Under the pieces are notes generated by a model. The model ran no database searches, had not been told where the DNA came from, and saw nothing but the letters and a program-made list of their open reading frames with translations. From Macrostomum lignano (Eukaryota): a DNA stretch of 64,000 bases. Numbering within the stretch: position 1 is the first letter of the stretch; every line of letters begins with the position of its first letter. Shown here one piece after another: positions 26,155 through 56,329 of the stretch. The position numbers and the translations under genes were made by a program. The DNA lies in assembly GCA_002269645.1 (NCBI GenBank), contig NIVC01000084.1, positions 310,001 to 374,000 on the forward strand, read 5' to 3'.

Positions 26155-26155
26155 C

Positions 26156-31532: not shown

Positions 31533-32482
31533 TCAATGAATAGCAGCGAAGAATTCGCAGATCTCGCTTTCGGAAATGAAGCCGCTGCTCATCATGGCGA
31601 TGGCTCGCACAGTTCCTTTGAACATTTGAAGGTCATTGAGTCGCTTGCCGAACCTTAAGTAGAACTGAGGCAGCAGAGTGTAGCTAGAATTAGCAATCAG
31701 GCTGAGAAGGAGGCCGTCGGCAAGAAGGCGTCGTTCACGAATACTCCCCACGAGCCAGCCGCTAGAGTCGATGTGAAGCCTATGTTCACCTACTCGTTGG
31801 CGTTCGAAGTCAGCGCAGTTGTCAAAGATAATTGATATAACGTGTGGGAGCGGCACCGGCTTCGGTTTTGATCACGAAAAGGAGTTTTGATGATGCGTTG
31901 TACTCTCAGATACGGGGGTAGTAGGGTCCGGTTTCAAAGTCAGCACAGTTTAGAAAATCAAAGAAGGCCTGCACCTGCGGCTGGTCTCAAATTCGGTTGG
32001 TCTCTTCGTCAGCCTGGCACACGACATTCTCAAATGCAGACATGTCGTCTCCGAGCCACACGTTTGTGAGCTTCGGGTTGAGCTGAGCCGGATATTTGAT
32101 CGGAAATCGGATGAGCACTCGGCAGTCGCTGCTCGCACCGCCAGAGACAAAGTCGCGACACATGGACTGGTAGCGGAAGAGACTGCAGCGGAGAGAGGCC
32201 GGCTTGAACTGGGCCACAATGATTCCGACTTTCTGCTTGTTGGACACGATCGCAGAGCAGTGCACATCGCTGCATGCTCGCCTGCGCTCGGTAAATCGCG
32301 CGGCGACCTCCGACAGGCACCGCACCTGCACCTGAGTCCAGGTGTCTCCGATCCGGCAGCATGTCAGAAAGCCCAACAGCAGTTGTATCGACAACCTAAA
32401 AACGTCTGAAATGAAATTAGAACCCTTGATATTTTTAAAGTCAATTTATTGACAGTCTGACAGCAGTTTTACCTTTCTTCAT
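31533..32482 (-). pseudogene. PAN/LamG-like family copy 1 (pseudogene); exon 1 32482..32473, exon 2 from 32405
   Basis: Homologous to copies 2-5. About 125-bp internal deletion after ETNRI gives a stop at 31987; further W-to-stop changes and frameshifts lie in the 3' half. Confidence 0.88.
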
Positions 32483-34270
32483 GTACAAAATATGCTGCAA
32501 GAATGAAAAAGTGAGTAAGAATACATATAATAATTTAATGTCTTCAAAAGCAGAATTTCTGACAAAGCTAAACCGCTGTATTTAAAGATTTCACCCCGAC
32601 TTTCCTATATCCATCGTCTACTCTTCTATTAGCTTTTCCTAGCGATAGTCAAACATTGAAATAATTGAGACAACTCTCAGGATAAATGAGCTAATGGGCA
32701 TTGCTGGAATACTTGAGGCTGTTAAATTAGCCACCACTTAAACTACCAGGTTTGGTGAGCAGCCTAGCTTTTCCCACCTCCACTATCAGCACAATATAGG
32801 AAAAAATACGGTTAGTGCTAGCACCGCGATCTATAGGGTGAACGTGAACGTTTTTTACCATATTCGGTCAGTTTCGAGGAATCATGCGTTAACTGATGGT
32901 ACGCATAAATCTGATCACTATGGATTAGTCCTAGAGGCTCAAAGATCCAGAGATCCAGAAGGTGAGATATTGTGAACTTCTCACTGAGTGAAAAACTAAA
33001 AACTTCTTATCTCGCTAACGTAATGCACAGCGAAAACCAGACAACAACGAAAATTTGCGCAAATTCGAGTGCGTAAGCGTCTTACAAGGTAATTTCTCGA
33101 AATGCAGCAGCACATTATGTCGGGCTAGCTTTTGTAATAACTTGCACATTAATTTTCATAATAGCTACGTAATTTCCACATGCAGAATTTAGCTGTGTAC
33201 TATATACGAAGTACTACTGGAACTTCTGATGCTGTTTGTGAACATGCATGGTTGAGCCAAGGACAACTTAAGTAGAAGGACGCAACACTCGAAATCTATG
33301 GTGAATGTTTTGAAGGCAACTTTTCGCCGAAAAATACACGACGGAGATAGGAGGTTTTGATTTTTTCAGCACAAAAATTGCTATTGCTTTTGATAGGAGA
33401 AAAACGCAATGTTCATCTTTTGATATGCTGTCCCTTTCTTATAGCTCTATCGATATTCATAAAGCATTTGTTCAGAAAATTGGAATTCAATGTTTAATTC
33501 TTATTCTACGTACATTTGCATGTCTCCTGTGCCTAAAAATCATTAAAATGGCACGGCTCAGCTCATTGGTTTTATGAATCCATTTTGTCATTCTTAGCTG
33601 ACTGTGTAACAAAAGATTCACAAGAGATTCACAAAACCAAAAATTCGAGCTGTGTCATGCATTTTTATGATTTTTGGGCACAGGAAATGTACGTAGAATA
33701 AAAAATTAGCATGGAATCCTAATTTTCTGAACAAGAAACTGTTTTGTATGTGCCGTCTAATATTGCAATAATTTAATATTTACAAGAGAGCTGCAGTCAC
33801 CCTAGCGAAGCGCCTTCGGCGACATCGTACCTTAACCATGCGCTTTGATGCAATTCTGCTCATTCCGCCGACTCCTTAGCGCATACAAGCGCACTAATAC
33901 TGTAAGCCGGCATCGGGATTTTGCCCTCGTGAGTTTGAATCGCATAACAACTCCTAGGTCAATGCTCGCACACAAGCCCAAATGAATGTGGCAAATCAAT
34001 GACAAAATAATACGAATGTACATGCATACGCTACCGCCAAGCCTTCCACTGAGTGGCTAGCGGGAGACGTATTTTGTTGTTTTGGTTGTACTTCACTGTG
34101 CATTCTGTATGCTGGTTTCGAGAAAGTGAAAACATCTAGTAAAAATTAAAACACTAATTAGGACAATTACATATATGCTCGCATTCCTGCCCAATCAAAT
34201 AAATTAAGACACAAAAATGTAACATCTTCGACATAAGTGTAAGCTTAGAAACCCAAAAACCATCATGAGT

Positions 34271-35382
34271 TCACAGTTTAAACTGTAGCGAGTTCACCAG
34301 TTGCTGCATGAGCTGCTCCTCACGGAAGGCGGCAAAGAAGTTTCGAATCTCGGTTTCGTTCATGAAGCTGCTGCCGATTGCGATGGCCCTGACCGAGCCT
34401 TTGAACAGAGTGGTATAATTGTGTCGTTTGCCGAACAGAAAGCAGAACTTCGATACCGAAATAGAAGTATTTACAGTTTGAAGATCAATGGCAGACGGCG
34501 GCAAGAAGGAGCCGTTCACAAACATTCCATAAGAGTCCGTTGTCGGTGTCGACGTGAATCTGACGTCGATCCACTCGCCGGCATTCACAGTGAGAATGGC
34601 TGGCGACATGAGTCTGTTACGTACTGCATTGGTACCGTAGAAGTTGACGTAGAGCCTTGATACTGAGGAATACTCCCAAACGTGGTGGTAGTAAGGCGAT
34701 GTGGCAAAGTTGGCGCAGTCCAGGAACTCAATCAGCGGCTGCACCTGCGGCTGCCGCTTCATTCTGAGCAGCACCGTGACGCCTGTGCCGAACCCGATGT
34801 TGCTCTTGTTCATGGCCAGAAACGAGCTGCTCCCATCGAACGCGGCGCCCTCCTCTGTCCACTGGACTCCGACCGGATAAATTCGGTTGATCTCTTCGTC
34901 AGCCTGGCACACGACATTCTCAAATGCAGACATGTCGTCTCCGAGCCACACGTTTGTGAGCTTCGGGTTGAGCTGAGCCGGATATTTGATCGGAAATCGG
35001 ATGAGCACTCGGCAGTCGCTGCTCGCACCGCCAGAGACAAAGTCGCGACACACGGACTGGTAGCGGAAGAGAGTGCAGTGGAGAGAGGCCGGCTCGAACT
35101 GGGCAACGGGAATGCCGGATAAGACAGAGCTGGATGCCAGCATGCAGCAGTGCTTGTGGCTGACAGCCTCGGAGATGCGGAATGCGGCAGCATCGGACAG
35201 GCAGTGCACCTGCACCTGAGTCCAGGTGTCTCCGGTCCTGCACTGGCAGGCAGTCATAAAAGCCATCAACTCAAGCCACGCCAGCAGAAAAGAAACTGAA
35301 GGTTTTGACGGTCAAATTGCTTTTTTAAATCAAGGATTCGAATGAAACGGCATGCTTGTGCTTATTTCTTACCTGTACACAT
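34271..35382 (-). CDS. Secreted PAN/Apple-like + LamG/ConA-like protein, copy 2; complement(join(34271..35295,35373..35382)), 344 aa
   Basis: 10-nt ATG exon, 77-nt GT-AG intron, hydrophobic signal (VSFLLAWLELMAFM). Cys-rich N-domain, then LamG-like FDGSSSFL..TVLLRMK..WIDVRF..MFVNG..FKGSVRAIAI. Domain names come from motif recognition only. Confidence 0.8.
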
Positions 35383-36199
35383 TTTGACGTCAATTTTTGG
35401 TGTCCAATATTGCTAGATTTTTTCAATGTTCAAGCCGAAATTTGCCTGTCTGGCTTTTACGCTCGTAGACTGTGTTTAACTTTCCTCTGACTCTGGGCCG
35501 GCCCTACATGCACGTACATGTATATAGTCGAGTGCCAGAGCGCCTGATAGAGATATTGTAAGGCACCTCTCTAGAAAAGTGTATCACTCCTTTCCCGTTG
35601 CTTTGGGCTACCATTGTCAGTTTAAACAAAATTTTGCTTGCCACTGCGCCTCATCAACTGGCTGCATTTTTAATGAGCCTGCCATTGTTCCCAAAACTCT
35701 GAAAAACTTCTTTAGCTGCAGATGAATAGCGAAACGGGTCTGGCTGAAACTCTGCTTCAAGACTTCTTCCAGCGTTTGGAAGAATCATTTGCCAATTAAT
35801 TCCAAATACGCTCGTAGAATAGCCAATGCAGCCTTCGCCCCCCCCCATCCTTAGCAAGTGAAGCTGCCTCTTGGCAGATATGAATACCGTTAATGAGACA
35901 CAGCAAGCCTATCCCTTGATGTAGGCGTCTCAGTTGCATGACTGCAGCCGCTTGCAGTGGCCTCTCATCCACCGTTTCGCTTGAATTTTTAAATAGGATT
36001 TGCAGACAATGCAAAGAAGTTCAGTTCAAAGGTTTCCATTGAATTGTTTGCTGCTGGAAGAAGTGGCTATGGAGAGATAGACAAAAGTACGAGTAAAAAT
36101 TCCATGCAGAGCTCTGAGGAAGAATCCATCTTCGTATAAAGTTAAATGTCTCCGATGTCTTGTCAACATGGCTTTACTTGAGTCTTCTTAAGATTTCGA

Positions 36200-37330
36200 A
36201 ATATTTTACGAAGCATCATTACCGTGGCTTAGGCCCTTCTCGACAATGCCTTGATCTACGTTAAAATGTGGATATAACGATGAAAAATCAACAGACAAAT
36301 TGGAGATAATCCAAGTCAACCTCTTAATCTCTTTTCGCAGATTATTTCGTCTGTCATTTGCACCTTAGTTTTTTTATTTCTTCATTCACAATCTCCATTT
36401 ATTTTAAGCGTTGAGTTCATGTCGCTGGCGGGCCACACCCCTCACCTTAGCTTTCTATCTTTCTTTTGGTTTAGCTGCTTGATGCAGTTTTAAGCGTACG
36501 ACAGCAAGCGACAATCGACGTCCAGTCGTCTAAGGATATGACTGCCGTACCCAACACCAGCAGCTGCTCTGCCGTACCCAAACATAATCCCTATAATGAG
36601 AGATCGCATTAGCTAATTCGAAACACTAGTTGTGCTTCAGATATATACGTCGTAGTTTCAAAGCTATACTGAAATTCAATAAATTAACATCAATAAAAAC
36701 TAATATAAATGACACATTAACAGTTAGACATATTTCAACTACGATTGATGACCATGCCAACCTTTCAAATAAAAAATTAAATGCAAAATTATGAGTTGCT
36801 AAGTCGAATTCGAAAGTTACGCCCGAGGTCAACCCAGTATTCCCCCCTCAACACTGCTAGGAAGGACGAGTTGAATGGATACATATACGAAGGCAGCCCT
36901 CCAGAAGAAGCAGTCTCAGCCGCACCTGTTGATGTCTCCGCCATTGCTTCCGCATCCGTCGTTGGTGGTGGTTGAGCAGGGCCAGATTCCAGCTGGCGGA
37001 GAATGTCAGAAATACTGGTTTCTGACCAAGGACTACTAGGTTGTTGTTGTTCATTCAAACTATCGGCCACATTGTCTCCTTGCCCTTGAGATTCTAAACC
37101 AAACTCCTCGAGAGGAATTCCGTATCCAATTCGGGCAGATCAGCACCATCTTCATCTATACTCGCAGAAAGCATCTCAGCGGTGACCGGCATACACTTGA
37201 GATCGCCTAAGTGAGCTCTCAGGTTCTCGAATTCGCTAACAGCCCTATGCCCCTCTTCTTGCTCTGCCACCACCAAGGCAATTATGCGCGGGCTTGCTCC
37301 CGATTCTCAGCCGAGTTCCAATTTATGACG
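36200..37330 (-). mobile_element. Highly decayed, possibly Penelope-type RT remnant
   Basis: Minus strand near 36300-36240 reads LSVDFSSLYPHFNVDQGIV, similar to the PLE RT motif SLDVxSLYxxI..EGI. Adjacent short ORFs have coding-like composition. Confidence 0.35.
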
Positions 37331-38697
37331 ATGTGGCTTCCATGTCTTTTTGATTGGCTTCTAGCCCAAATGCACACACACACAGATATGTTTACAAGGT
37401 ACATATTTGTATGCATACACGAATTATTTTCTTACCGTTATCGAACAATAAATAGTTATATATAATCCGTTTTTCCACGGAAATTCCTGCGGCAGAGTGC
37501 ACATAACTCCTACTAGCTTCATGGGTTTGTGTAGAGAGTTATTAAAACCATATCGTAATATCCTACTTAAAGTAATATTCTAAGAAAATCAATGCGCAAA
37601 TAGAGTGATTCGGAACCCTACGTAGAACCAACGTCTGTTTAATCAAGGAACCGGTTTCCAACAGCTGTATTTGCTTAACCCCATTTATGATAGTGCTCAA
37701 ACATACATGACAGCTTAATCAAACATGAATGACCTAAGTAAATATTTGATCCCAAACCGGGTTTGCCCCAAAATTTTGCTGCAAATATTAAGTGAAAATC
37801 CGAGTCAAAAACTGAGACTCACAGCGGTCTCTGAGAAGACTCCGAAGAAGCAAAGAAGAAGAAAAGGAGACCAATCTCTGAGGGACTAAGCTTGTCCGAT
37901 TGGTAAGCGTTTACCAGCTTTAGTTTTTTGTTGCTAGCATTACTAAGTGGATTAATTAAGTTTACGAGAGCAGTTTACTGACAACACATTTGAGAAAGGC
38001 ATCCTTGTTTCCTAGGATATATTCCTAGAGGATTTATTGATTGATTATCCGTTACGTTTCGGGCGTAAAGAAGAAGACGAACTTCAGGAGGACCTATTAC
38101 AAAAACTTGAAGAATTCAATTGTTTATAAGGGCGCACGTTCTATTGCTAATTCCGAGCTCGAAGACTATCAAGAAATTCTGATTTGCTCTCGTTTTGGTC
38201 GACCTACAGATAAAGCCAAGGATCCACAGAAGCCATCCGTCACTACAGCACAGCAAAGCTCGCTACACTCTTCAAGACAAGACGTTTGCAATTTACAGAG
38301 GAGTAAGAGTTATGTGATCTTACATATACCCAGGCACTTGTTCCCCAGTGTCTAGAAGCGGGAGTTTTTGAGTGACTGATCACCACTCCTAAACTCTTCA
38401 TTTGAATCGGATAACAACTCCTGCCAATGCTAGTACACAAGCCCAAATGAATGTGGCAAAATAAACGACAAAATATTACAGACGTACATGCATATGCTAC
38501 CACCAAGCATTCCACTGAGTGGCCTGGCAGGAGAATTACTTTGTTGTTTTTGTTGTTGTATTCCAATGTCTATTCTGTATGCTGGTTTCGAGAAAGTGTA
38601 AAACATCTGGTAGAAATTCAAACACTGCTTAGGACAATTATTTCTGCACAAAACAGATTTATTAGGACACAAAAAGATAAACCCTACTGACGTAAGC

Positions 38698-39723
38698 TTA
38701 GACCCTACTGTTGCCGATTGCGATGGCCCTGACCGAGCCCTTGAACAGGGTAGCATGATTGTACCGCTTGCCGAACCGAAAGCAGAACTTCGACACCGAA
38801 GTAGAACCAGCTAGCGTTTGAAAATCGATGGCAGACGGCGGCAAGAAGGAGCCGTTCACAAACATTCCATAAGAGTCCGTTGTCGCTATCGACGTAAATC
38901 CGACGTTGATCCACTCGCTGGCGTTCGCGGTAAGAAGGGCTGACGACATGATTCTGTTACGTACTGAATTAGTATCGAAGAAGAGGACATATAACCTTGA
39001 TACTGAGGAATACTCCCAGATGTGGTGGTAGAAAGGTCCTGTAGCAAAATTAGCACAGTCCAGGAACTCAAATAGCGGTTGCACCTGCGGCTGCCGCTTC
39101 ATCCTGAGCAGCACCGTGACGCCTGTGCCGAACCCGATGTCGCTCTTGTTCATGGCCAGAAACGAGCTGCTCCCATCGAACGCGGCGCCCTCCTCTGTCC
39201 ACTGGACTCCGACCGGATAAATTCGGTTGGTCTCTTCGTCAGCCTGGCACACGACATTCTCAAATGCAGACATGTCGTCTCCGAGCCACACGTTTGTGAG
39301 CTTCGGGTTGAGCTGAGCCGGATATTTGATCGGAAATCGGATGAGCACTCGGCAGTCGCTGCTCGCACCGCCAGAGACAAAGTCGCGACACACGGACTGG
39401 TAGCGGAAGAGACTGCAGCGGAGAGAGGCCGGCTCGAACTGGGCAACGAGAATGCCGGATGGAAAGGCATCGGTTGCCTGCATGCTGCAGTGCTGTTCTG
39501 TGAATGCCTTGGATATGCGGAAGGCGGCAGCATCGGACAGGCAGTGCACCTGCACCTGAGTCCAGGTGTCTCCGGTCCTGCACTGGCAGACAGTCATTAA
39601 AGCCATCAGCTCTAGCGCTGTCAGCAGAAAAATAACTGAATGTTTTGCGGTAAAATCGCACCTTTTTAATCAAATATTAGCAAGATAACAGAATGATTGC
39701 GACTACGTCTTACCTGCAGACAT
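38698..39723 (-). CDS. PAN/LamG-like family copy 3, C-terminally truncated; complement(join(38698..39635,39714..39723)), 315 aa
   Basis: Same 10-nt first exon with a 78-nt intron. Versus copies 2 and 4, about 110 bp are deleted near 38707, removing the final helix (ends AIAIGNSRV*). Confidence 0.78.
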
Positions 39724-40419
39724 TTTGAATCCTAATCGGTGTCCAGTATAGGTAGATGCTTTCATATTGTGTGGTGCCTCTTTACAAAATTCCTTCCCGT
39801 TGCTTTGGGCTTCCTATGTCAGCTTAAACGATATTTTGCTTGCCACTACGCTTCATCTGCTGGCTGCATTTTTAATGAGGCTGCCATTGTCCCCAAAACT
39901 CTAAAAAACTTCTTCAGCGGCAGGTGAAGAGCGAAACTGAGATGGCTGAAACTCTGCTTCAAGACTGCTTTAAGCGTTTGTAAGAATTGTTTGCCAATTA
40001 ATTCCAAATAGAATAGCCAATGAAGCCTACGCCCCCCATCCTTAGCAAGTGAAGCTGCCTCTTGGCAGATTTGAAAACCGTTAATGAGACACAGCAAGCC
40101 TATCTGCTGATGCTGGCGTCTCAGTTGCATGACTGCAGCCGCTTGCAGTGGCCTTTCATCTACCACTTCGCTTGAATTTTTATATAGGATTTGCAGACAC
40201 TGCAAAGAAGTTGAGTTCTAAGGTTTTCCATTAAATTATTCGCTGCTGGAAGAAGTGGCTATGGAGAGATAGAAAAAGTAGGAGTAAAAATTCCACGCAG
40301 AGTTCTGATGAAGAATCCATCTTCGAAAGACAAAGTTAAATGTCTCCGATGTCTTGTCAACATGGTTTTTACTTGAATCTTCTCAAGATTGCGTATTATT
40401 TTCATATTATTAGCAGCTT

Positions 40420-41190
40420 GGAATACAAATTTTACTTTGACAGCCAGGCCGCTATTAAGGCCTTGTCTTCCATCAAGCTCTCAACCAAGTCAGTTTCAGA
40501 CTGCTTCAAAAGCTTGCAGACCATGGCGATTCTCAACAGGATCAATGTTATCTGGACAACAGGACATAGCAATATTCTCGGCAACGAGCTAGTGGATCAA
40601 CTCGCCAAACGGGGTAGCATCCCGGATGGAGCGCAACGTTCGGTCAAGTTACCTTCTCCGAAGTCATCAGTCAACCGCGCCATTCAGAATGGCTGAACCA
40701 CCAACACCGATGCACTGGAACAGCTGCTCCGAATATCGCCAAACACGAACGGCAATGCCTGCCATAAACCGGAAAGTATTCGAATAGCTAATCTCCTTAA
40801 GTAAAACTGACCTCAGGGAGTGTCATTACTGGCCATGGCTTCTTCCAGAGACATATTTCACTACAAAGTGGTTGCTCCCCTATCTGCCCCTTCTGTGATT
40901 TAGAGGAGGAAACCTCGACGCACCACTTCACTTTTTGCCCGCACTTCAACGAGGCGCGGAGACGTCACCTCGGTCGCCCGCTAGGGCTGGACGAGCTCAC
41001 CACTTCTGACCGGATCCGGGACCTATGGGACTCTGGACGGATGAAGATCGCGGACGCCAGCCTTGCGAACTCTTCTGCTGCTGGCGAGGGGTGGGCGCAG
41101 CCCCAAGGCTAACGCCTTTCTGTTTTTAGCTGGGGGTTGCGATAGAGGCCTCACGGCCTAATCGCGGCGTCCTGCCCCCCGTCAGAAGTA
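40420..41190 (+). mobile_element. Degenerate RNase H-containing LINE 3' remnant
   Basis: [28 protein letters not shown]; downstream TGH-like and CPFC..EET..HF motifs; 3' UTR shared with 51000-51090. Confidence 0.8.
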
Positions 41191-42904: not shown

Positions 42905-45900
42905 TTACAGATTGCAATTGTTGAAAGTGCAGTTGTTCATAATAAAGATATTCCGACCGTTCATCTGACGACCATCAGACACGCTCACTGCTTCTTGCAC
43001 GATGGAACTTTGGATGCTGATGTCAGCAGGCACTGTTACTTGACCGTGGGTCGCGGCGCTTTGTCCCATGTTCAACGCACGCGACACTGCATCGCTGCAT
43101 TGTTGCAGGGACTTGTCCCGTTTAACTGCCAGGTAGCGCCGGACCGTGCTCTCGGACTTTTGACCCGTGATAGCCATGATCTCGCTCATCGAATGCCCAG
43201 CCGATTCCAGGTCACACACTCTGCTAACTCTAGAACAATTGAGCAATTGAACTGTAAACTAGACTCAATCAGACACAAGTTGAAAACATTGATGTAACTA
43301 CGCTCTGGTCGCGGGATAGGGCATGGGAACTTTTTCGAAAGTGCCTCCTATCCCGTGCACCCTCTGCACAGAGCTGTCGAGACTCGGCCAGGTCTCCGCC
43401 CAGGCCTGGAGACTCCCGCTCTGCTGCACCCCTCCTACTGCCTTGGTTCCGTCTCCCCTGCCGCCACACCTGCCTTTCCGGAGCTCCCTGTCCCTCTCTG
43501 TACTCTCCCCTCTACGAGTACCTCCCTTGCACTCCACCCTATTCCTCTTGTACTCTCCCTTTCCCCCCTCTTTTTGTCTCTCTCTGCACTCTTTTCCTGC
43601 GCTGTCCCCTCCTTCTCTGTGTCTACTTACAGTATTTTGTGTGCTCACCGTCTCCCCATCCCCTCCCAAACTCCCAAACGGTGACGCAAGTCGTGTGACC
43701 CCTTCTTCCCCCCGATGACTCATCGATGACTCATCCCCCTCTCTTTGTCAACCTTTTCTCATGCCATTGTTCTCCTCCCCAAATTTCTCATGCGACACCC
43801 ACCCCACCTCCGCTTCTATTGTTCTCGTTTTTGATTCTTTTGTTCTCTCGACCCCCACCAATTATCACATTTTCTCCGATTTTCTCTTTCTTTTGTTCTC
43901 GTTTTCGCACCTAATTATCACCTTTTCTCCTATGTTTACTTTTCCATTGTTCTCAGTTTTCCCCAATTATCCCCGATTTCCAATTCCTTTGTTCTCGACC
44001 CCAGCCCTATTGTTCTCAATGTTTGCTTGCGCAACACTTTCGCGACCACCCGCTGCGCCAATTATCCCCCCACCCCACCTCCGGATTGCGCAATTTCCCG
44101 ATTTCTCATGTTGCTATGCCGGTCTCATGCTTCTCATCATGACTCATTCTGACGTCATTCTGCCGGCAGCCAATCAGAGAGAGGGAGCCATGGTAACGAC
44201 CTTGAGGAGGCGGCTGTGAGGTCTATAAAAGGAAGCGATTTCGGCATGAGAATCCTCAAGCCTTTTCCACCTTGGCGCCTCTTTGGGCTTGCCATCAGAC
44301 TGAATTCTGACCCATTCGTCTATAAGACGAATCCCTGCCGGTCTGCGGTCTGTTACTGCCAAGTTATCCTTAGCTCCCCAAGTGAGCTCGCCTATCGGCC
44401 AGCGGTCGGATACCGCCCAGCATCATCAGCATCGCCTGATCTACATCAGCGCCTCGTCGCTCCAGCGCATCGCCGCTTCACTGTCTGCCTGACTGCAGCC
44501 TACAGCCACCCTCGGTCACTCCGCCTCTTTGTCTCTCTGTGCAGCTGCCGGTAAGTTCCTGTTACTAATTTGTGCTCTAATTGCCTTTGCTTATCCGGGG
44601 TTTGCCTATTTTCCATTGTCTGATTAGAGAGCTGAGCCAATTGTGATACCGTATCTTTTGCTGTATTTTACTCAATAGTGAAGCCGCCTAATTGCCTGAA
44701 TTTTCGCCTAAGGGCCTAATTATTAACTATTAACTAACTTCATCATTATTCAATCTTTCACCATCATTTAACTCATGGCTTGCTAAGCCTTTCTCCCGGG
44801 GTGGCAAAGCATAAGGAAGTTTGGGTAAGCTAATGGCCTCTCCCCGTGCAAAGCCCGCCTGTGAGTGCGTGCTGCGGGGCCGCGTGTGCGTGCAGTAGAG
44901 GGATTAGCGAGTCTTGGCACAGAATGGCAGTAGGAAGGTTGCAACCCCATGCTAACGCGTCCCTTCGCCCTGAGCAATCTAAACTAGAGACAGTACATGT
45001 TCGCCTCATACTACTCTTAGTAATCAAAGTCGCAAGCCAGCCTCGCTCACAGCCACAAAGGATCCCCTGCTGAGAAATCCTCCAGGATTGAGCCCAGAGT
45101 TCCCGATCATGCCCCAAGCAGAGTCCCTGTACTCGGCTGCATGCGTCTCCCCTGTTAGCCTAAATCCCCTGGTAACCAATCCAGGCGGGGCTCTAGCCTC
45201 GAGAGGTCTGGTAGAAAGATCCAGGTGCGCCAGGTCACATAGAGTGGTGGCAGCCACTCGGTCATACCATGACCGAGTGACCAACTATTGCACCTTGGCT
45301 ACAGGTGGGGTCCATGTGGGTCCTTGGCCCTCTGGTCACGAAGCGCTACCAAAGCTACTAATCATGTGGGCGGGACAGTCTGGTGCTGGAGGTCCGTCAG
45401 GTCATTGCCCGGTCATAGGCAGCCTACAATCATCGCCCCCTCTAGCCAAGCGTTTGTCTCTCAGTAGGAGCGGACAGGCGACAAGGGCGGTTACATCAGC
45501 ATCACATGCACTTCCCCGACCAACTGACTCACCGAATGCTATGATTGGTGTATTCCTTAGACAGCTTCGCTTTTTTGCTCAGCGCCTTCATGAAAGTCCT
45601 CAGGTAATTTATTCCTCGTTTCTGCTTCGAGCAAAATCGTCTGGTGCCTCCTGCATTCTTCAGTGGCCTGGGAAACAATGAGTCGTTCTTCGTCTCCGTT
45701 CGTAATATAGCCATGTAGTCGTCCACAATTCCAACATCGTAGATTCTCGCCTGCTTTACGTCGATGTCACGCTTGGCTCGATTGGGATCGGCAGACTTGT
45801 TTTTGGAATTCAGTACAGGCAATGCGTAGTACGGTCTTTCATCCGAGTCTTCGCGCTTCACCAACCACTTCTTGGATTCAATCGACTCCAGATGTTCCCT

Positions 45901-46601
45901 TCCTCGTTCTCCTAGGCCGTACAGAACGCGAAATAGAAACTCATCCTGAGTGGTCTCTGCACTTGATCTGTCGAAATACGTCCGTAGCTTCTCCATATCA
46001 CCCTCCTCGATTGGCGGATATGATCGAACCTGACCGCCGGGTTGTGCCATTTCCTGACTTTCATTCGGAGCATTCTATTTGCTAGAACGAATTCCTCACC
46101 ATCGATAATGTTGATCGTTAATCTAGCCACCATAGTCAGAAAGCGCTGTATCCCGGCGCGGATGCACACAAGATTTGCAGGCGAGTATGGACCGCCATCT
46201 TGGCGACGCAATTCATGAACAGCAGCTCCATGTTCGCGAAGGAACTGCACAAAACCGTTACCATGAGCAATCATCTGCTCTCGCATCTTGGTTGGTAGGC
46301 TCACTATTTCATCTTTCGTCATTGCCTCTTGCATATCCAAAGGAACTCGTTTCGGCTCAGTTTCATTCTCTCCATCCTCTTCAGCTGGAGCATCATCCTC
46401 GGCCGGTAGCAGAGGCAAATCATCGGCAGTATCACCGCTCTCAAGAAAGTGCAAGAAGTTCAAAAAGTCTTCGTTATCCTTCATGTCCTTCTGAGATGTG
46501 GAAAGTCTTGAGATCCAATTGAGTTCGCTGCTAGATACGTTGGCTAAACTTTCGACAGGCAGATTGCCCCAGTTGATCGGATATGACGTCTGGTTCTCCA
46601 T
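42905..46601 (-). mobile_element. Crypton-like (DUF3504-type) tyrosine recombinase gene; exons 46601..45533 and 43229..42905, one frameshift near 46050
   Basis: Core-binding-like YSPANLVCIRAGIQRFL; catalytic motifs GERGRE, YTNHSIR/VSRV (joined by a cg|gtgagt donor and ttctag| acceptor), IMAITGQKSESTVRRY. Exons total 1394 nt, one base short of 465 codons. Confidence 0.78.
43293..45495. mobile_element. 2.2-kb insertion with TGTAAC...GTTACA ends (solo-LTR-like) inside the recombinase intron
   Basis: Terminal inverted hexamer. CCAAT (about 44170) and TATAAAA (about 44224) on +. Removing it leaves a 100-nt intron. No TSD found. Confidence 0.5.
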
Positions 46602-47554
46602 GGCCAAGCGAATGTAGCTATTTACGTTTTATTCCCTCTTTCTCTCCACATCTCCTTCCTTTCCACCCTCTTAACCCCCAGCCTGTTTGCAACTTCGTTG
46701 TCTATGGCCCAAACTCCAGTAAACCACCTCAGTCTTTATGTCTCTCTCTCCTCTGTAACCCCTCTCTCCTTTCGATGCCCTTTTTGTCTATGGCCCCACT
46801 GAAATTCGACAATGCGGTTATTCCACTCATGAGCCGGACTGTTATCCTAAAGTCTCACTTACGAATAACCAACCATTGTCCTTGTCCTAATCTGATAGCT
46901 CGTATTCTTAAAGGTAAATAAGCAAGACTATTGTTATGGAACGGCGTACGCTCCTGCGTTGTTAAAAAGAATCTTGACAAATACTAAAATACTTACGTAC
47001 ATTTCTATATTAAATTTGTTATCTAATCGCTATAAAGTTTTAGATTATAATTCTGATGAAGAGTTAGAAACAGCTTTGTAATAGTAAAGCACTTCCTTTC
47101 TAATAAACATTCGAACAGAATCTGATATGGATATGATACGACAAAGGACGCCTAAATTACCTAATAAAAATTTTGAAGTAAAACAGTATAGACTTCGACT
47201 GCGAAGAGAACCACAACATTTGGAGAAAGTTTTAATCGAATCTTTACAAATATTTAGTCGTTTAAATCCTAAACTACAGAAACTTTAGGTGTCAATGCTT
47301 TAGCCGAAAAAACAATTTGCACGTCATGTCTGTAAATATCCGTAATTGGAGTAAAGAAATCAGAGACAGCGACAGGAAAAAGTCAAAAGAAATTCAAACA
47401 ATTCTTAAGAAATTTATTCCTGCACAAATCAGATGAATTAAGGCGCAAAAAGGTAACACCTATTGACTTAAGTGTACCTAAAACCTAAAACCTAAAAACC
47501 GTCGTGAGTTCACAGTTTAAACTGTAGCGAGTCCAGCAGTTGCTGAGCTGCTCC

Positions 47555-48614
47555 TCACGGCAGGGCGGCAAAGAAGTCTCGAATCTCGGTATCGCTCATG
47601 AAGCTGTTGCCGATTGCGATGGCCCTGACCGAGCCCTTGAACAGGGTAGCATGATTGTACCGCTTGCCGAACCGAAAGCAGAACTTCGACACCGAAGTAG
47701 AACCAGCTAGCGTTTGAAAATCGATGGCAGACGGCGGCAAGAAGGAGCCGTTCACAAACATTCCATATGAGTCCGTTGTCGGTGTCGACGTGAAGCCGAA
47801 GTCAATCCACTCGCTGGCGTTCGGGGTGAGAATGGCTGACGACATGATTCTTTTGCATACAGAATTAGTATCGTAGAAGATGACGTACAATCTTGATACT
47901 GAGGAATACTCCCAGATGTGGTGGTAGAAAGGTCCTGTGGCAAAGTTGGCGCAGTCTAGGAACTCAAACAGCGGCTGCACCTGCGGCTGCCGCTTCATTC
48001 TGAGCAGCACCGTGACGCCTGTGCCGAACCCGATGTTGCTCTTGTTCATGGCCAGAAACGAGCTGCTCCCATCGAACGCGGCGCCCTCCTCTGTCCACTG
48101 GACTCCGACCGGATAAATTCGGTTGGTCTCTTCGTCAGCCTGGCACACGACATTCTCAAATGCAGACATGTCGTCTCCGAGCCACACGTTTGTGAGCTTC
48201 GGGTTGAGCTGAGCCGGATATTTGATCGGAAATCGGATGAGCACTCGGCAGTCGCTGCTCGCACCGCCAGAGACAAAGTCGCGACACACGGACTGGTAGC
48301 GGAAGAGACTGCAGCGGAGAGAGGCCGGCTCGAACTGGGCAACGAGAATGCCGGATGGAAACGCATCGGTCGCCTGCATGCTGCAGTGCTGTTCTGTGAA
48401 TGCCTTGGATATGCGGAAGGCGGCAGCATCGGACAGGCAGTGCACCTGCACCTGAGTCCAGGTGTCTCCGGTCCTGCACTGGCAGACAGTCATTAAAGCC
48501 ATCAGCTCTAGCGCTGTCAGCAGAAAGTAAGCTGAAAATGTGGAATTGAAATATAGTTCTAAGTCACTTCTTAACTTTCCACAGCATGAAATACTTGTTC
48601 CTACCTGCATGCAT
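47555..48614 (-). CDS. PAN/LamG-like family copy 4; complement(join(47555..48531,48605..48614)), 328 aa
   Basis: 10-nt exon ATGCATGCAG, 73-nt intron, in-frame exon 2. A 1-bp difference from copy 2 gives the earlier stop FFAALP*. Confidence 0.8.
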
Positions 48615-49749
48615 GTTGCGGGTAACTAAATGTCTCTAATGGCTAGAAAGCTACTTAGATTTCGTATTTTTCAATGTAAAGAATTGAATCTGTTTTTCTG
48701 GTTTTTCCTCAGTTTTTTTTCTTGACTCTCCGTTCCCCCATAATATAGGCGGTGTTTTGGCGTTTTCTGAATGTCTTGAGCTGACTCCCGACTTGCAGAT
48801 GATTGGCACTTCTATTGTCAGGTAGACAATGTTTTTGCCTTGCCAGTGCGACTCAACTTCTTCCTACTTTATCCTCAGAGGTCCTCAAGACGCTGAGCTC
48901 AACCTCTCTAGTGGCAGTTAATCAGACTTTTGCAGTTCAACAGGCTAAGCGCCACCCTGTTCAACAATGAATACCTCAGCGTTCTCCCATCCTTGACGGG
49001 TGAAAAGCCGCGCCTCTCGAGAGCTACAAGTTGTTGGGAAAGATCAATACAAGATACAGCTCCAGCGCAGAGCTTGCAGGTTTCACAGTTCTCCCACTTT
49101 TTCTGAGAAAAAATTCCAACTCTTTTGCCAAGTTCTTAAACGGAGGCTGAGAAGAATGAGGGGGCTGAGGGTAGATGGGGCAGCAGAGATGGGTTAGGCA
49201 TAGCCAGTTAAAGCTTCAAGCTCAAGCTCAAATTTAGAGTAGCTCTTCAATTGCTGGAGCCAAAATGAAGGTACTATGAATTAGTAGAATGAAGAAGCTT
49301 TCACTGAATACCAATGCTAAGGCTTATACACTGCACTATTGCTTGTACGAGTAGGACCTGAAGCGGTTAAAAGAAACTCAGACTGGCGCTAGTTGCAACG
49401 CGCAGCAGCAGCAGGTCCTTGAGCTCTCCAATTCAAATTTTACGAATGCAGCACACGTCCAGTGGGGGTTAAAAAACATTCAAAGCTTTTTAGGCCGTCG
49501 AGGGTCTAAACATGGATTCGAATCCCGTCCTATGTCACATAAATTTAAAGCGCGTACCGGAAACTGGATTGGAGACCGCGTCACTCTAATGAGATTCAAT
49601 CTATCAAAAAGGAAACCGCAAGTTGCGTACCCTGTCTGACAGTGAGAAAATCAGAGCCGCTGCTTATTTTCCCAATCAGTTTCAGACTGACTGTTTCAAA
49701 AGCTTGCAAAGCTCAGCGATGCAAATTAATATCAACGTGATCTGAACAC

Positions 49750-51090
49750 TAGGCCATGGCGACATACTTGGCAAGCGAGCTGGTGGATCAACTCGCCAAA
49801 CGAACCCCGGCAGCCCGGGCAGTTCGGTCAAGCTGCCTGCCCCGAACTCGAAGTCATCCGACAATTGCATCATTCGCAACTGGCTGATCAATCAACACCA
49901 GCTGCATTGTTGGAACAGCTGCTCGGCGAATATCGGCAAACGCAATCTGCGATTCCCACTATAAACTGAAAAGTACCCAGTCTCTTTAAATTAGCCGGGC
50001 ATTAGACCCTAACGCCCCCCTCGCCGTGTTCGCGTAACTCAACCCCCCCCCGTGTACAATGGGATGCACATGTGCTGAAAAAATATATTAAAATGAGCTG
50101 GCGGTGGGCAAGGGAGAGCGTGCGTATGAGCTAAATAATGAATCATAATTGGTTATAAATGCCCCTATTGGACCAGATATGCAACCGACAGCCAGCCGCA
50201 GCTATTGCGCAGCGCATCTGAAAGCTGTGTACGGTCCAAGGACTGTTCAGTACAAGGACTGGGGCTCGCCACACACCCTCAATTACCCCAGCTAATGCTG
50301 GCACCCATTTTACAGCTGGGTGAACTGAAGCAATGCAGAGTTAAGAGTTTGCTCAATGACATAAATTGTTCCAGTGGAATCAGGAATCGAACCCACGACC
50401 TTCAAGTCGTGATTCTGACGCTCTAACCACTAGGCTACAACCCCCTTGAGCTAGTTTCGACGGCACAGTCAGTTACGCGTTAATTTCTCAAACACAAGAC
50501 ATTAGAAATACTCCGCTCGCTCTACCTCGCTTTACCTTTGTTTGTGGCCGCCAGAATTAAAAGAAAGAAATCAGTGAGTGTTATCTGTTCATTCCGTGGG
50601 GACACTCTCAATGAGGACACTAAAACTGGGGGAATTAGGGACGGAATTACCAAGTCCATTGACGTGATCTTACGCTCAGCTACCGAAGTCAGTCCGACCA
50701 ACGGACTGAAGTGTTCTCGGGCTCGCCCGCTGAAGAGAGTCTGTCCCGCAAGTTATTTCGATTAGGCCGAGTCACAACATAGCCATGACTGACCATGACT
50801 TCTTCCAGAGACATATCTTACTAGAGAGGATTGCTTCCCAATTTGCCCCCTTTTTGCGGCTTAGAGGAGGAAACAGCGGCGCACCACGCCACATCCTTCC
50901 CACACAGGTGACATCTGGGCCATCCATAAAGGATGGACGAGCGGACCAACCCGCACCTAATCAGTGACATTCGCACGTTCGTCTGGGAATTCAGCTACGA
51001 GCGTAACGCCTATCCTGTTTTTTAGCGTGAGGTTTTGATAGGGTATTCGCGGCCTTTAGAATCGCGGTGTCCTGCCCCCAGTCAGTATAA
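49750..51090 (+). mobile_element. Second degenerate copy of the RNase H LINE 3' end, split by an about 0.8-kb insertion
   Basis: 49757-49965 aligns with about 40560-40790 and 50770-51090 aligns with about 40820-41190. The intervening DNA contains a SINE. Confidence 0.7.
50210..50445 (-). mobile_element. tRNA-derived SINE copy 2
   Basis: Minus strand gggggttgtagcctagtggttagagcg..gtgggttcgattcc..gccagcattagctggggtaattgaggg, matching 29732-29925. Confidence 0.72.
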
Positions 51091-52011
51091 AGTGCGAGAC
51101 AACTAGCTTTGGCCTAATAAAATAAGACCTGATTTGACGTTGAGCGTCAATAAATCACAGCAACAAGCTTCCGTAGCGTGGATGAGCAGCCAAGCTGATG
51201 GAAACTCTCGGCAAGGCGGTGCAGTTCACGAACGTTCTCTCCAAACGATCTGTTATATAGAGCAGGTAAAAATAAAAAACTGGCTTTTGACTATTTAGAC
51301 TTTAAACTTCACGTTTAAACGGAGATTTAGAAGTTAAATATTTCATTACAATACAAAAAAACTTAAAATGATTCGAAATTCAACGATTCAAGAAAGATCC
51401 TGGAACTATCGCCATTTTTTCGTCAATTATTTTGGATTATTCGTCAACCAGAAATTCGAAGGTTGTTAAAAATTTAATCAAAAACTACTTGCTTGGAAAC
51501 TTTGATAAATAAGGACTTTATCTGTGAATGCCTTTGCTCAGGACAGGCTCCCTCACTTCGAATTAGACTCGAACCTTTCCGACGTTTTTAGGCCCGAGAA
51601 TTTCCGTGCAAGCTTGTTTGATATCTAAGGACTACCGGGCGAACGACCATCCACCTCCTGGACTCTCCTGAAAGGGGAGAAAGTCCTAAAAGAGGTCCTC
51701 GCACCACATGATCTCCCTGCGCGATACCACAGCACAACAATGTTAAATCCGGAGCCAATGATAATTCAGCTCTTGCACAAAAGTTTATTGTCAATCATGT
51801 TTCCTATGGCTTAATTAAACTCAAACTCTGTAGACAATTTAAATCTACTGTAATTGGTTTTCCGAGTGAAGAAGATTATTAATTTACACGTACGCTACTG
51901 TAACGTTGCTACTTTACTCATGCAACAAATGAAAGTGTGTCGTGGTGTTAGCGATCGATCGATCACGGCTATAGGCTATAAGTAGCCAATGCCGAATTTA
52001 AATGAAAAGAC

Positions 52012-53616
52012 CACAGATACTATATAACTAGATAGGTCACTCGGTTAATTTACTCTCACACTACTCTTAGGACCAGCCATCAGTAGTGAAAAATAGCAAA
52101 AAAAATAATTTTTGCAAACGTGTGCTCTGGTAAAGCGGCTCTGCATGGTAAAGCATGTTTAGAAGAGATTCATTTTCTGCATGCGTGCATGGTAAAGCAG
52201 TATTCAAGTTGTCGAGTTCGTATTATAGACAAAACATATTAATAGTACTGCGCCGCGGCGATGCCTAGCACTTTTTCCTAAAAATATATATGTATAGATA
52301 TGGCTCTCTCTTCTGCTTGGTCAAGCAAAAGGGTCTTTTAGCCATAGACAACAAAATTAACAGCGGTGCCCAGTCATATATATAGTAGGAGAAAAGAAAC
52401 CAAGACAACGCTTTAGTCGCTGCTGTTGCTGTTTCAGTTCTTTCAGTGCACTTTCCTATTAAAAAATTAAATATTTGGAGCGACATGGACAACTACGATG
52501 CCGAAGATACCGAAGATGTCGATGACTTGATCAAGGCGTGTGAGGAAGCCGAGCGGCAGGCAGCTCTGGAGGAGCAGCTAAGCTGTGAGGTTGCAGCGAG
52601 CATGCTGCGGCTGCCGTCAATCTTTTCGAAGACGACGAGATTGCCGCTGACGATCTGATTGCCGCTGCCGAAGCAGCCAAAGCTGCCGAAGCTGAAGCTG
52701 CCAAAGCTGCTGCTGAATTGCCCGAGCGGCAGAAGCAGCACCACCAAAAGCAGCAGCAGCAGAAGAGAGCATCTTTGCTAGTGACCGACTCGCAGCGACC
52801 CGGCTCTATTGGCCCGGCGGCGGCCGACGACGACAATGATGTTAAGTTCACTGCGAGCGTGGTCCCGGACACTGACGAAGAGACACCGGGCCAGCCGATT
52901 AGCAGCAGCAGAATTAAACGAGAACTATTCGGCGACGACGACGACGACTTCCAACCCCGATTGTCGTCACCACGGACACCGCCGGTGGCCAAACGCGCAA
53001 GCCGGCCCTGGAGCGTCAACCGCGGATCTGGACGCCCTCGACTAAGAATTCGGCGACGAATTGGACGCCACCGATGATGTCGTCGCCTGCTAGGTCGTCT
53101 TGCTTCTTGTTTCTGCTACCTTGCCAGTTTGCAGTTTCGTCTCTTTTGACGTTTTTTTCTTGTTTTTTGACAATAAAATCAGCAATTTTAGATGATTTTT
53201 TTAGTATATAGGACTGTACTGTTGACAAGTATTTTAAGGTGTTTCAAGTCCAAATTGTTCAACTTATTGATGTCTTAAATAAAAGGGCATATATGTTACT
53301 GCCTATTCTGCGCAAAAATAAGCATCTTACGATCAATAGCGTACATAGGAGATACATTGAAAAATCGACCATCAATGAAATTTTCACCAATTCTGAGTCT
53401 TGCGTCCTTCTACTTAAGTAGTCCTTGAGTCAAGAATGTACACTGTAGAAGATTGTGCATATGGTTAAAAACTTCATTTCCGATCGATTTCATTTTAGTC
53501 ACTGATAAGAATGTTTCTAATAATTTGCATTTACACTACCGTCCTAAGAGTAGTATTATTTTTGCCCCCCACAGCGAGATAGGGAGTGTGACCTATCTAG
53601 TTATGTAGTATCTGTG
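52012..53616. mobile_element. Non-autonomous P-like (or hAT-like) DNA transposon, 29-bp TIR, 8-bp TSD GAAAAGAC, carrying an acidic cargo ORF
   Basis: TIR CACAGATACTA(T/C)ATAACTAGATAGGTCAC at 52012-52040 and 53588-53616; gaaaagac at 52004-52011 and 53617-53624; subterminal IR ctactcttaggac. Confidence 0.9.
52485..53090 (+). pseudogene. Frameshifted acidic/Ala-rich low-complexity ORF inside the TIR element
   Basis: MDNYDAEDTEDVDDLIKACEEAERQ.. continues after a frameshift as AVNLFEDDEIAADDLIAAAEAAKAAE..QKQQQQK..IKRELFGDDDDDF. GC-rich coding-like composition in AT-rich flanks. Confidence 0.55.
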
Positions 53617-54018
53617 GAAAAGACTTGACTGGAGTTTCCAAAATAGTCGATAATCTTCTCTCGAGGTGCGAGTATTTTATTATTGGCTGACAATAATTTC
53701 AGTACTACATCTCCAAAAAATCTGTTCAAGATATTGCAAGTTGAATTGGTATATATATAATTATAAAGAAATGTCAATCAATACAAAAGAAGTAGGCACA
53801 ATGTACAATGAGACCGATCGATAAATGTATTCTGAAAAAGAGTCGCATTTACGAGCAACTCTTCAAATTAATCAAAAGAAAATATTGGAGTTCGAATTGA
53901 ATATTCAAATGACATCGTTACACTACAATGTAAAAAATTTGCTTAAGTCATTTTTGGAAAAAAAATTACGTTATTGCCAAAGATCTTTTTAAGCAATCAA
54001 AAATTTAGATAACAGATA

Positions 54019-54984
54019 CTTCGGGTGTGTCATAAGTAATGTCACTGATGTGAAAACAGACGAACTTGCAATCGCAGATGAACAAAACTGTACCACTCAA
54101 CAACATAGAGTCCCCCAATATCAATCACCCTCTGGCAGTGCTCATACAGCTTGTCCACCTCAGCCTGCAGGTGTTTTTCCTCCAACTGCCATAACCAGTG
54201 CAACGCGCCTGTTTTACCTCTTCATGGTTTGCAACTTTTCTTGGAAAAGTCAGCCTTCAGCCATTTGAACAGGAATCTCTTGCAAAAGTTGAAGTCCGGG
54301 CTGTAGGGACTGTAAGAGCAGATTCACTCGCCGTGCAGGCAGAAAATTCGAAACAGCCTTCAGGTGTGCAGCCGTGCGGTGTCCATCTGCCACAGAACTT
54401 CGTCCCGGTGACATGGATTTGACCGGAGAGTGCGCCAGAGGTATCCAGTGTGCCGGAAAAAGTCGATAAAATACTGGCCATCGACCTTGGTGTTCGGTGG
54501 AGTTGTGCAGATGGAGACTCATTTGTTTGGCGTGAAGGCTACCAGCAGCATGGTCTTCTTGTCCGAGATGGACTTCCTGGTCACCATCGGCCTGGAGTCC
54601 CCAGCTCCCAGCCAGCAGCGATTGTCTGCCTTGCTGCCCTTGCCATCCAGGTGGAGCCAGCTTTCATCCTCAGCAACCAGGCAGTTTAGGATGTCATTCA
54701 AGCCCCGGCTGCTAAACACCTTGCGGATCTGCTTGGTGCAGGCGTCATGTTGAGATTCATGGTGATTTTTGTTCGCTGCATAGACGGTTTTTCATCGCGT
54801 TGCACTTGCTAAATCTGCTTGGCGTATTCTTGCGATTAGCTTGGGCCATAAACAACCTTTGCACGTCTCAAATGCACTGCTATTGCTTCACTAAGTATAC
54901 TTTGCAGCTACACTACCCACAAGTCCATGTGCCTACATATTTTAGACAGAGGCCTGCAGTGACATTACTTATGACACACCCGAG
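54019..54984 (-). mobile_element. Tc1/mariner-type transposon remnant with about 29-bp TIRs and TA TSD
   Basis: TIR C(T)TCGGGTGTGTCATAAGTAATGTCACTG at both ends, flanked by TA. Transposase motifs VAEDESW and SPYSPDF on the minus strand, with stops. Confidence 0.88.
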
Positions 54985-55258
54985 TATTATCCTCAGTGGT
55001 TTTAAACAGCAGTTTTTGGTACGAATATGAGCTACTGGTATAATATAAGTAAGTACAGGTAGGTATAGCACACATTAAATTGTGTCAAAAGTGCTTAGTT
55101 CATAGATCATTCGATTTTTTCATCAGCGATTCATTTACAAACGAAAGATTCAATATTATTTGAGAAAATTCACATTTGACGTTACAGCTTTAAAATTGAA
55201 ACAAAAAGCCATCCACTATTCTTTCAATTCATTCCCACGGCTCAAAGCACTGAGTCTA

Positions 55259-56329
55259 CTAGTTTGACACAAGCGCGAAGAACTCTCGGATTTCGGCCTC
55301 GGACATGACGCTCGTGGCCATTGCAATGGCGCGCACTGTTCCTTTAAACATCCGGGCATCGTTAAGTCGCTTGCCGAACCGGAAGCAGCTCGGGGAGATA
55401 AAATCGAAATCGGTTGCTGATGTGACAGTCACAGTGGACGGAGGCAAAAAGCCGCTTCCCAGGAAAATTCCCCAAAAGTCGGCTGCAGGCGTTGATGTGA
55501 AACCCAGATTCACCCACTCACTGGCGCTCGAAGTCATTGGATAATTTGAGGTCATGAACCTCTGTGGAGCGCTGCTGGCTTGAGTCTTCACTTTAGCGTA
55601 CGGTTTTAAAGCTTCGCTGTTCTCCCAAATGTGGCTATAAAACGGACCGGTTGCAAAGTTCGAACAATCAAGGAACTCGAAGAAGGCCTGCACCTGCGGC
55701 TGCCGCTTCATCCTGATCAGCACCGTGACGCCTGTGCCGAACCCGATGTCGCTCTTGTTCATGGCCAGAAACGAGCTGCTCCCATCGAACGCGGCGCCCT
55801 CCTCTGTCCACTGGACTCCGACCGGATAAATTCGGTTGGTCTCTTCGTCAGCCTGGCACACGACATTCTCAAATGCAGACATGTCGTCTCCGAGCCACAC
55901 GTTTGTGAGCTTCGGGTTGAGCTGAGCCGGATATTTGATCGGAAATCGGATGAGCACTCGGCAGTCGCTGCTCGCAGCGCCAGAGACAAGGTCGCGACAC
56001 ACGGACTGGTAGCGGAAGAGACTGCAGCGGAGAGAGGCCGGCTCGAACTGGGCAACGAGAATGCCGGATGGAAAGGCATCGGTCGCCTGCATGCTGCAGT
56101 GCCGCTCCGAGACCGCCTTGGAGATGCGGAAGGCGGCAGCATCGGACAGGCAGTGCACCTGCACCTGAGTCCAGGTGTCTCCGGTCCTGCACAGACAGCA
56201 AGTCAGAAAACCCAGCAGTTGTAGGACAAGGAAAATCATCACATTTTCTAAAATGATAATTGATACTTTCTTTAGATTAAAAAGGGTCCCTGTGCATATT
56301 AAGAAGTATTATCTTTTACCTGGAGGCAT
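55259..56329 (-). CDS. PAN/LamG-like family copy 5; complement(join(55259..56247,56320..56329)), 332 aa
   Basis: 10-nt exon ATGCCTCCAG, 72-nt intron, signal MIFLVLQLLGFLTCC, intact ORF with a divergent C-terminal half. Confidence 0.82.

Follow-up and report, generated by a model that had tools for sequence, protein, structure and literature searches.

A tandem array of predicted secreted proteins in Macrostomum lignano with signs of segment-restricted gene conversion

The DNA considered here is a 64-kb window of the genome of the flatworm Macrostomum lignano (contig NIVC01000084.1; "the window" is the whole stretch that was analysed, and all coordinates refer to it). Between positions 31533 and 56329 it carries five head-to-tail paralogues, all on the minus strand, which encode predicted secreted proteins of a Macrostomum-restricted, unannotated and new family. 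Their patchwork of identity is probably the product of segment-restricted interlocus gene conversion within the tandem array, a reading to which a probability of roughly 0.78 is given. Repeated short-tract conversion would hold two segments of exon 2 near-identical in all copies, namely 60-69 nt at the mature N-terminus and a block of 369 nt. An island of ~80 nt in the N-domain and the last ~140 codons would be spared conversion and would diverge, subject to purifying selection that is ordinary to relaxed. An earlier reading of this DNA from its letters alone (the original prediction) had proposed that particular regions of these genes evolve in concert through gene conversion; in favour of this are the identity at silent sites, the mosaic groupings, the homogenisation of dead copies, and an identity that is far higher within than between species.

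A homogenised block with a sharp edge

The 369-nt block (VAQFEP...RQPQVQ) is situated at 34739..35107 in copy 2, 39079..39447 in copy 3, 47975..48343 in copy 4 and 55688..56056 in copy 5, always on the minus strand, and its DNA identity among these four copies is 97.8-99.2% (97.8-98.9% for copy 5 against copies 2-4). Copy 4 differs from copies 2, 3 and 5 at 3, 3 and 5 of the 369 positions, respectively. Just one of its differences from copy 2 falls in the last ~340 nt, where identical runs of 182 and 157 nt flank the single mismatch, and it shares with copy 3 an exact run of 324 nt (39465-39142 in the latter). There are 4 differences between copies 3 and 5 over the 369 positions, so the near base-identity that had been claimed for these pairs of copies is real. 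In the pseudogene copy 1 (31969..32217, minus strand), 249 nt of the block are left after a 120-nt deletion. This remnant is 95.6-96.8% identical to the other copies, with five mismatches at the deletion edge included, and has an exact run of 174 nt in common with copies 3 and 4.

The identity extends to silent sites. Synonymous divergence (dS, Nei-Gojobori), whose uniformity along the genes, with congruent 5' and 3' trees, had been named as one observation that would speak against conversion, is 0-0.027 in the block; in the C-terminal half (C-half), copies 2-4 reach 0.23-0.32 among themselves, and comparisons with copy 5 are saturated. The contrast between block and C-half is significant in every pair by Fisher's test, both over all sites (p = 2.5e-7 to 4.6e-53) and at third codon positions alone (p = 6e-5 to 9e-31). 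For 5 of 6 pairs, a maximum-chi-square analysis finds the breakpoint at nt 494-495, the base after CAGGTGCAG (QVQ), and the block ends at nt 495; the collapse of identity right after QPQVQ had been seen correctly. The GC content at third codon positions (GC3) is 0.75 in the block and 0.59-0.68 in the tails. The mature N-terminus is covered by another short invariant segment (CRTGDTWTQVQVHCLSDAAA, 60-69 nt), ahead of the variable patch.

The variable island and the tails

The variable patch, or island, is enclosed between the invariant N-terminal segment and the block. It comprises ~81 aligned nt in copy 4 (AFRISKAFTEQHCSMQATDAFPSGIL; 48344..48424, minus strand), and the homologous positions on the same strand are ~35108-35188 in copy 2, 39448-39528 in copy 3 and 56057-56137 in copy 5. 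Here the identity of copy 2 to copies 3-5 is no more than 70-72%, a divergence of 28-30% between flanks that are 98-100% identical, whereas copies 3 and 4 share 97.5% and copy 5 is 90% identical to both. For copy 5 against copies 3 and 4, dS is 0.2 in the island and ~0.01 in the block. The ratio of nonsynonymous to synonymous divergence (dN/dS) of the island is 0.17-0.73 over the M. lignano pairs and 0.61-0.73 when copy 2 is compared with the rest.

In the C-half, copy 2 is 82-87% identical to copies 3 and 4 at the DNA level and copy 5 is the outlier (55-59%). Over this half, protein identity between copies 3 and 5 is 48.8%, in line with the estimate of about half that had been made earlier. 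The tails have a dN/dS of 0.09-0.43 (Nei-Gojobori), and their substitutions favour neither strands nor loops (15 of 65 positions in strands and 22 of 74 outside them). The term "hypervariable", applied to the divergent segments in the original prediction, is thus not warranted. No segment in either of the two species considered below reaches a dN/dS above 1 in pairwise averages. The island is the least constrained part, with a dN/dS of 0.6-0.9 and never above 1.

One tract of the C-half is identical in a single pair of copies: 164 nt of copy 4 (47604..47767, minus strand) match copy 3 (38708-38871) exactly, and the C-halves of these two copies are otherwise ~15% divergent. The tract contains 74 concordant polymorphic sites in a run (permutation p = 1e-4, Sawyer-type test). 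This test, which relies on polymorphic sites, is poorly suited to the main block, which is nearly monomorphic across copies.

Discordant groupings of the copies

The relationships among copies change from segment to segment. Copy 5 joins copies 3 and 4 in the island, with copy 2 as the outlier; copy 2 joins copies 3 and 4 in the C-half, with copy 5 as the outlier. Sites 306 and 344 of the block set copies 2 and 4 against copies 3 and 5. Outside the array, the paralogue P0003 combines a copy-5-like tail with an island like those of copy 1 and of another paralogue, P0002. The original prediction had based the discordance on a grouping of copies 1 and 5 against copies 2, 3 and 4. This grouping can be found in signal-peptide DNA (72.5% versus 60% identity) and in the last 40 residues (70% versus 53-57%), but it is weak, as copy 1 is equidistant from every other copy over the entire C-half DNA. 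The discordance itself is upheld by the differing outliers of island and C-half.

The same organisation in a second species

Nine genomic contigs (L001-L009) from environmental assemblies of JGI samples 3300040776, 3300040777 and 3300040801 and of ENA ERZ650205 represent one organism, a second species; L009 is one additional contig, from a scan of metagenome DNA. They encode paralogues ~30% identical to the M. lignano proteins. Several of these contigs begin within one exact shared sequence, which is the expected picture where a repeat makes an assembly graph branch.

Block proteins are 30-40% identical between the species and ~99% identical within the M. lignano array. In block windows, identity is 0.56-0.74 within the second species against 0.17-0.39 between species, whereas the tails are about equally identical within and between species. 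Comparison of L001, L008 and L009 gives a dS of 0-0.05 for the signal-peptide segment and for a segment of 46 codons; the island between these two, at a position homologous to that of M. lignano, has a dS of ~0.8 and a dN/dS of 0.67-0.88. The tail dN/dS in this species is 0.40. L004 and L006 show 0 synonymous differences over 30.5 sites in the next constant segment, and their tails are saturated. In all 21 pairs, identity collapses within the 30 nt that follow LLRxKRxP, just where it does in M. lignano. CAGGTGCAG is not present at the homologous boundary in this species.

One contig has a further peculiarity. L008 follows the family sequence to VWVMSDD within 58-828 and then continues into unrelated sequence (coverage 0.61), a switch that may reflect an insertion, an intron or a chimeric low-coverage contig.

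Gene copies in the array

Every copy has the same structure, with a 10-nt exon 1 (ATGnnnnnAG), a phase-1 intron of 67-78 nt that ends in GT...AG, and one long exon 2. A tblastn search with copy 4 across the window found no copy beyond the five. Five same-strand paralogues had been announced, and the minus-strand array stands; the copies are not equally whole, however, since only copy 2 (344 aa), copy 4 (328 aa) and copy 5 (332 aa) are intact, copy 3 is 3'-truncated and copy 1 is a pseudogene. All five were delimited on the minus strand from spliced translations, for copies 1-3 together with alignment.

Copy 5 (55259..56329; exon 1 56329-56320, intron 56319-56248, exon 2 56247-55259) has an open spliced translation and the most divergent C-half. 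Copy 4 (47555..48614; exon 1 48614-48605, intron 48604-48532, exon 2 48531-47555) supplied the protein used for the AlphaFold model. Copy 3 (38698..39723; 315 aa; exon 1 39723-39714, intron 39713-39636, exon 2 39635-38698) has lost the last ~22 codons, the stop and the beginning of the 3' untranslated region to a deletion of ~130 nt, and is without the C-terminal helix conserved in the family (M[ST]xxEIxxFF). In copy 2 (34271..35382; exon 1 35382-35373, intron 35372-35296, exon 2 35295-34271), a 1-nt deletion near the end makes the C-terminus 16 codons longer. Copy 1 (31533..32482; exon 1 32482-32473, intron 32472-32406) carries, besides the 120-nt deletion within the block, in-frame stops and a C-half that runs across three frames.

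The copies are 3-9 kb apart, with unique DNA in between. Their short introns (35296-35372, 39636-39713, 48532-48604 and 56248-56319) are 40-66% identical between copies, whereas copies 3 and 4 have the same exon 2 sequence from base 6 onward. Homogenisation in M. lignano therefore ends at or near the intron-exon junction.

Two observations concern the surroundings of the copies. The ~450 nt upstream of copies 2 and 3 (35592-36035 and 39794-40226) are 88-92% identical, well above the introns of these copies, and are either part of the duplication unit or one transposable element inserted twice. Retroelement fragments (a gag-aspartyl protease and two RNase H pieces; 27900-28505 and 30342-31382 on the minus strand, 40340-40696 on the plus strand) stand between and beside the family copies.

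Protein architecture and fold

An AlphaFold2 model of copy 4 built on a 21-sequence alignment has a mean predicted local distance difference test score (pLDDT) of 84.7 and a predicted template modelling score of 0.79; a 6-sequence alignment gave a pLDDT of 30, and confidence rose only once distant relatives had been included. The model consists of a hydrophobic N-terminal helix, a Cys-rich domain (residues ~22-100), a linker and a jelly-roll sandwich (~139-324) of 13-14 predicted strands. The N-domain is modelled as beta-beta-alpha-beta-beta-alpha-beta with six Cys residues. The spliced N-termini are hydrophobic (e.g., MPPENVMIFLVLQLLGFLTCCLC|RTGD) and modelled as a low-confidence helix, presumably a signal peptide. 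The most conserved residues of the entire family are those of the LLRxKRxP motif. In the model, the block corresponds to residues 63-185, which run from the last part of the N-domain through the linker into the first strands of the jelly roll. Because it straddles these parts, it is not a structural module.

The LamG/ConA (concanavalin A)-like nature of the C-terminal domain has been borne out. A Foldseek search with the whole model, from which the N-domain was not isolated, gave 187 PDB matches at E <= 0.001 (best E 2.4e-7, probability 1.0), dominated by the jelly roll. Essentially all of the top 50 are ConA-like or lectin-like jelly rolls, at sequence identities of 9-13%. The clostridial neurotoxin HCN subdomain, the trans-sialidase lectin domain and NEL (TSPN/LamG) are among the matches; the likeness to the neurotoxin subdomain is that of a generic binding fold only and says nothing on toxicity. 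Laminin_G_3 of Pfam matches 7 of 21 family members at E <= 0.1 (best E 1.2e-5). No window copy passes its gathering threshold of 27.6 bits; copy 2, the sole window copy with a (weak) match, is best with 15.2 bits (E 0.025). A profile search against PDB sequences gave marginal matches only (E 0.25). The proposed PAN domain was not detected with profiles: Pfam PAN_1-4 did not match four N-domain sequences from both species at E <= 10, nor the full-length copies. We infer that the protein is secreted and has a protein-, glycan- or other ligand-binding role; the immune, adhesion or recognition function suggested by the original prediction is hypothetical.

Relatives and public gene models

The only close database relatives are three UniProt entries from M. 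lignano, and an exhaustive HMMER search yielded 25 relatives, which are more M. lignano paralogues and short environmental contigs. One of these entries, P0001, residue-identical to copies 3 and 2, is UniProt A0A1I8H4S8 ("UBC core domain-containing protein"), a chimeric model over window positions 34739-39606. It joins copy 3 (through ...RQPQ) to copy 2 (from CRTGDTW...) with CAG|GTGCA read as the splice donor. The names "COIA1" and "DOMON" of related entries are likewise wrong, these entries being fragments of the same family. The block is shared by all five copies and by P0002 and P0003 from elsewhere in M. lignano; block identity at other loci, like the genome-wide copy number, was judged from protein only. 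In another M. lignano paralogue, P0005, the block protein is 52% identical. Literature searches returned nothing on this family.

Gene conversion and alternative explanations

How conversion might be confined to parts of a gene can be sketched as follows. Protein constraint would keep the paralogues alike enough for heteroduplex formation, conversion would then wipe out even silent differences, and less constrained segments would drift past what recombination tolerates. The tract end coincides with the end of family-wide protein constraint, just past LLRxKRxP, and the simplest reading of this sequence pattern is that the boundary would be set by the end of protein constraint and not by a DNA signal. 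We infer a feedback between constraint and conversion. Selection on the protein is not the cause of the identity, since the block is also present in copy 1, a pseudogene, and in the truncated copy 3. Nor is the sequence intrinsically frozen, for it is only 30-40% identical to the second species and 52% to P0005; ~99% identity within the array against 30-40% between species is, as a sequence pattern, the classical signature of concerted evolution. The higher GC3 of the block would be compatible with GC-biased conversion. A cDNA-mediated form of conversion was considered and is unsupported, the intron being kept in all copies.

Some points weigh against conversion with passive divergence elsewhere. 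The individual conversion events are deduced from the pattern of sequence, and the contigs of the second species are short-read environmental assemblies in which chimeric contigs are possible. Furthermore, the divergent ~80-nt island persists between two homogenised tracts in the same place in both species. Passive divergence would explain this persistence poorly, which hints at selection for diversity. It is possible, although unlikely, that the genes form a selected constant/variable repertoire, in which conversion acts and diversifying selection keeps the island and the jelly-roll tail different, each paralogue having its own ligand on a common scaffold for innate-immune, gamete or secretion recognition. 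The homologous positions of the island and of the constant-to-variable boundary in two species would fit such a repertoire, as would the strong divergence of the island of copy 2 amid almost identical flanks and an island dN/dS (0.61-0.73 in M. lignano and 0.67-0.88 in the second species) that exceeds that of the tails. However, dN/dS is above 1 in no segment and lies at 0.09-0.43 in the tails, the loops of the tails show no excess of substitutions, two copies out of five are defective, and ligand differences between paralogues would be a postulate. The wider proposal of a macrostomid constant/variable repertoire, conserved across species and recognising microbes, mates/sperm or substrates, would be rather doubtful on this evidence.

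A recent chimeric duplication, in which a single unequal crossover or segment replacement put one 5' half on old 3' halves, would also yield the sharp QPQVQ junction with one event per copy. It is improbable, because the block is found in all five copies and in P0002 and P0003 from elsewhere, because tracts of differing age and length are nested (the island of copy 5 at dS 0.2 beside its block at ~0.01; the 164-nt tract of copies 3 and 4), because an island between two identical tracts requires at least two exchanges per copy, and because the pattern is found again in the second species. Silent sites might instead be frozen by selection on the nucleotide sequence, through an antisense open reading frame (ORF), an RNA element or splice signals at CAG|GTGCAG. 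In copies 2-5 an antisense frame is indeed open for ~170 codons (34739-35250, 39079-39590, 47975-48486 and 55688-56199, plus strand), and CAGGTGCAG, the splice donor of the public gene model, occurs nine times in the window (0.49 expected), only in these genes (31969-56167, minus strand), near both ends of the homogenised region: in each gene, once within TWTQVQV and once where the block has its 3' edge. Yet the pseudogene and the truncated copy are homogenised as well, the block is unconserved between species, the motif is missing from the boundary in the second species, no Rfam family matches, and an open antisense frame is expected at a GC3 of 0.75, of which it is probably a by-product. Nucleotide-level selection is very improbable as a whole; the antisense ORF as a constraint was rejected, as was CAGGTGCAG as a recombination or splice signal fixing the boundary, given its absence from the second species. 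An artefact of assembly or polishing, whereby reads of several copies were mixed and the consensus falsely homogenised, would draw on the repeat-rich nature of M. lignano assemblies, on the ability of multi-mapping reads to remove sparse paralogue-specific variants, and on the possibility that the UniProt models do not stem from an independent assembly. Such an origin is highly improbable: variants private to single copies persist in the block (three in copy 2, three in copy 5 and one in copy 3), polishing cannot turn 14-44% divergence into ~1% with a base-sharp breakpoint, the copies lie kilobases apart with unique DNA between them, and an unrelated short-read data set from another species has the same kind of exact shared blocks.

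Other features of the window

Exons of an AP-3/adaptin-beta-like gene are found at 14326-17996 on the plus strand (Adaptin_N, E 3.8e-65; acidic Glu/Asp-rich hinge), with a 28-nt minisatellite at 16645-16931 within the locus. An ORF at 22396-23490 (minus strand) matches PAD_porph (Porphyromonas-type peptidyl-arginine/agmatine deiminase, E 1.1e-6), and minisatellites of 28-33 nt (22404-22668 and 23317-23540) flank and partly fill it; a 28-nt unit akin to these is also present at 20670-21152. The ORFs at 45529-46607 (minus strand) have no Pfam match, and scanning the window for Rfam families and tRNAs gave nothing. Simple repeats include ~2 kb of (CTGT)n from 61954 to the window end at 64000, a 17-nt minisatellite of 53 copies (60608-61506), (ACAG)n at 26093-26357 and a 24-nt unit repeated 21 times (9580-10086), which is readable as an ORF. 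Positions 1-8000 are AT-rich, with a GC content of 27-31% against 40-54% elsewhere in the window.

Comparison with known systems

The mechanism proposed here is textbook; what is new is the family and a mosaic conserved in two species. With this array, a flatworm model organism supplies a clean and quantifiable case of concerted evolution restricted to gene segments, whose breakpoints are sharp to the base and whose pattern is repeated in a second species. The array also defines a lineage-restricted, unannotated and predicted-secreted family, the public models of which are chimeric and misnamed ("UBC core", "COIA1", "DOMON"), and its divergent tails are unique tags for expression and RNA interference studies. 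If the island and the tail are indeed selected, the family would be a new invertebrate recognition repertoire.

Short-tract interlocus conversion is known in tandem families such as human gamma-globin HBG1/HBG2, RHD/RHCE and the red/green opsins. The array resembles these in its partial-gene silent identity, sharp edges, mosaic phylogenies, and paralogues closer within a species than the same segments are between species. It differs from them in being undescribed as a family, in a tract that has its start within exon 2, where the mature N-terminus is encoded, and extends across two domains, in a divergent island inside the homogenised region, and in an architecture that is repeated in a second species.

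Conotoxin and snake-venom superfamilies combine a conserved signal/pro region with a divergent mature region whose dN/dS exceeds 1. Like them, the array is a multigene family, here of predicted secreted proteins, in which the 5' coding part is conserved to silent sites and the 3' part is divergent. Unlike these toxins, its tails have a dN/dS of 0.09-0.43, and the constant part includes folded domain sequence rather than the leader alone; nothing here points to a venom or toxin role. With ConA-like/LamG domains (Laminin_G_3, clan Concanavalin) it shares the predicted jelly-roll sandwich at ~139-324; the identity is 9-13%, however, the window copies are below the Pfam gathering threshold, and no ligand-site residues can be assigned. 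Biomphalaria FREPs and sea-urchin Sp185/333 are diversified invertebrate recognition families. They, too, are tandem secreted paralogues of constant and variable elements, whereas the present array shows here no sign of somatic diversification, immune induction or positive selection, and has no domains in common with them.

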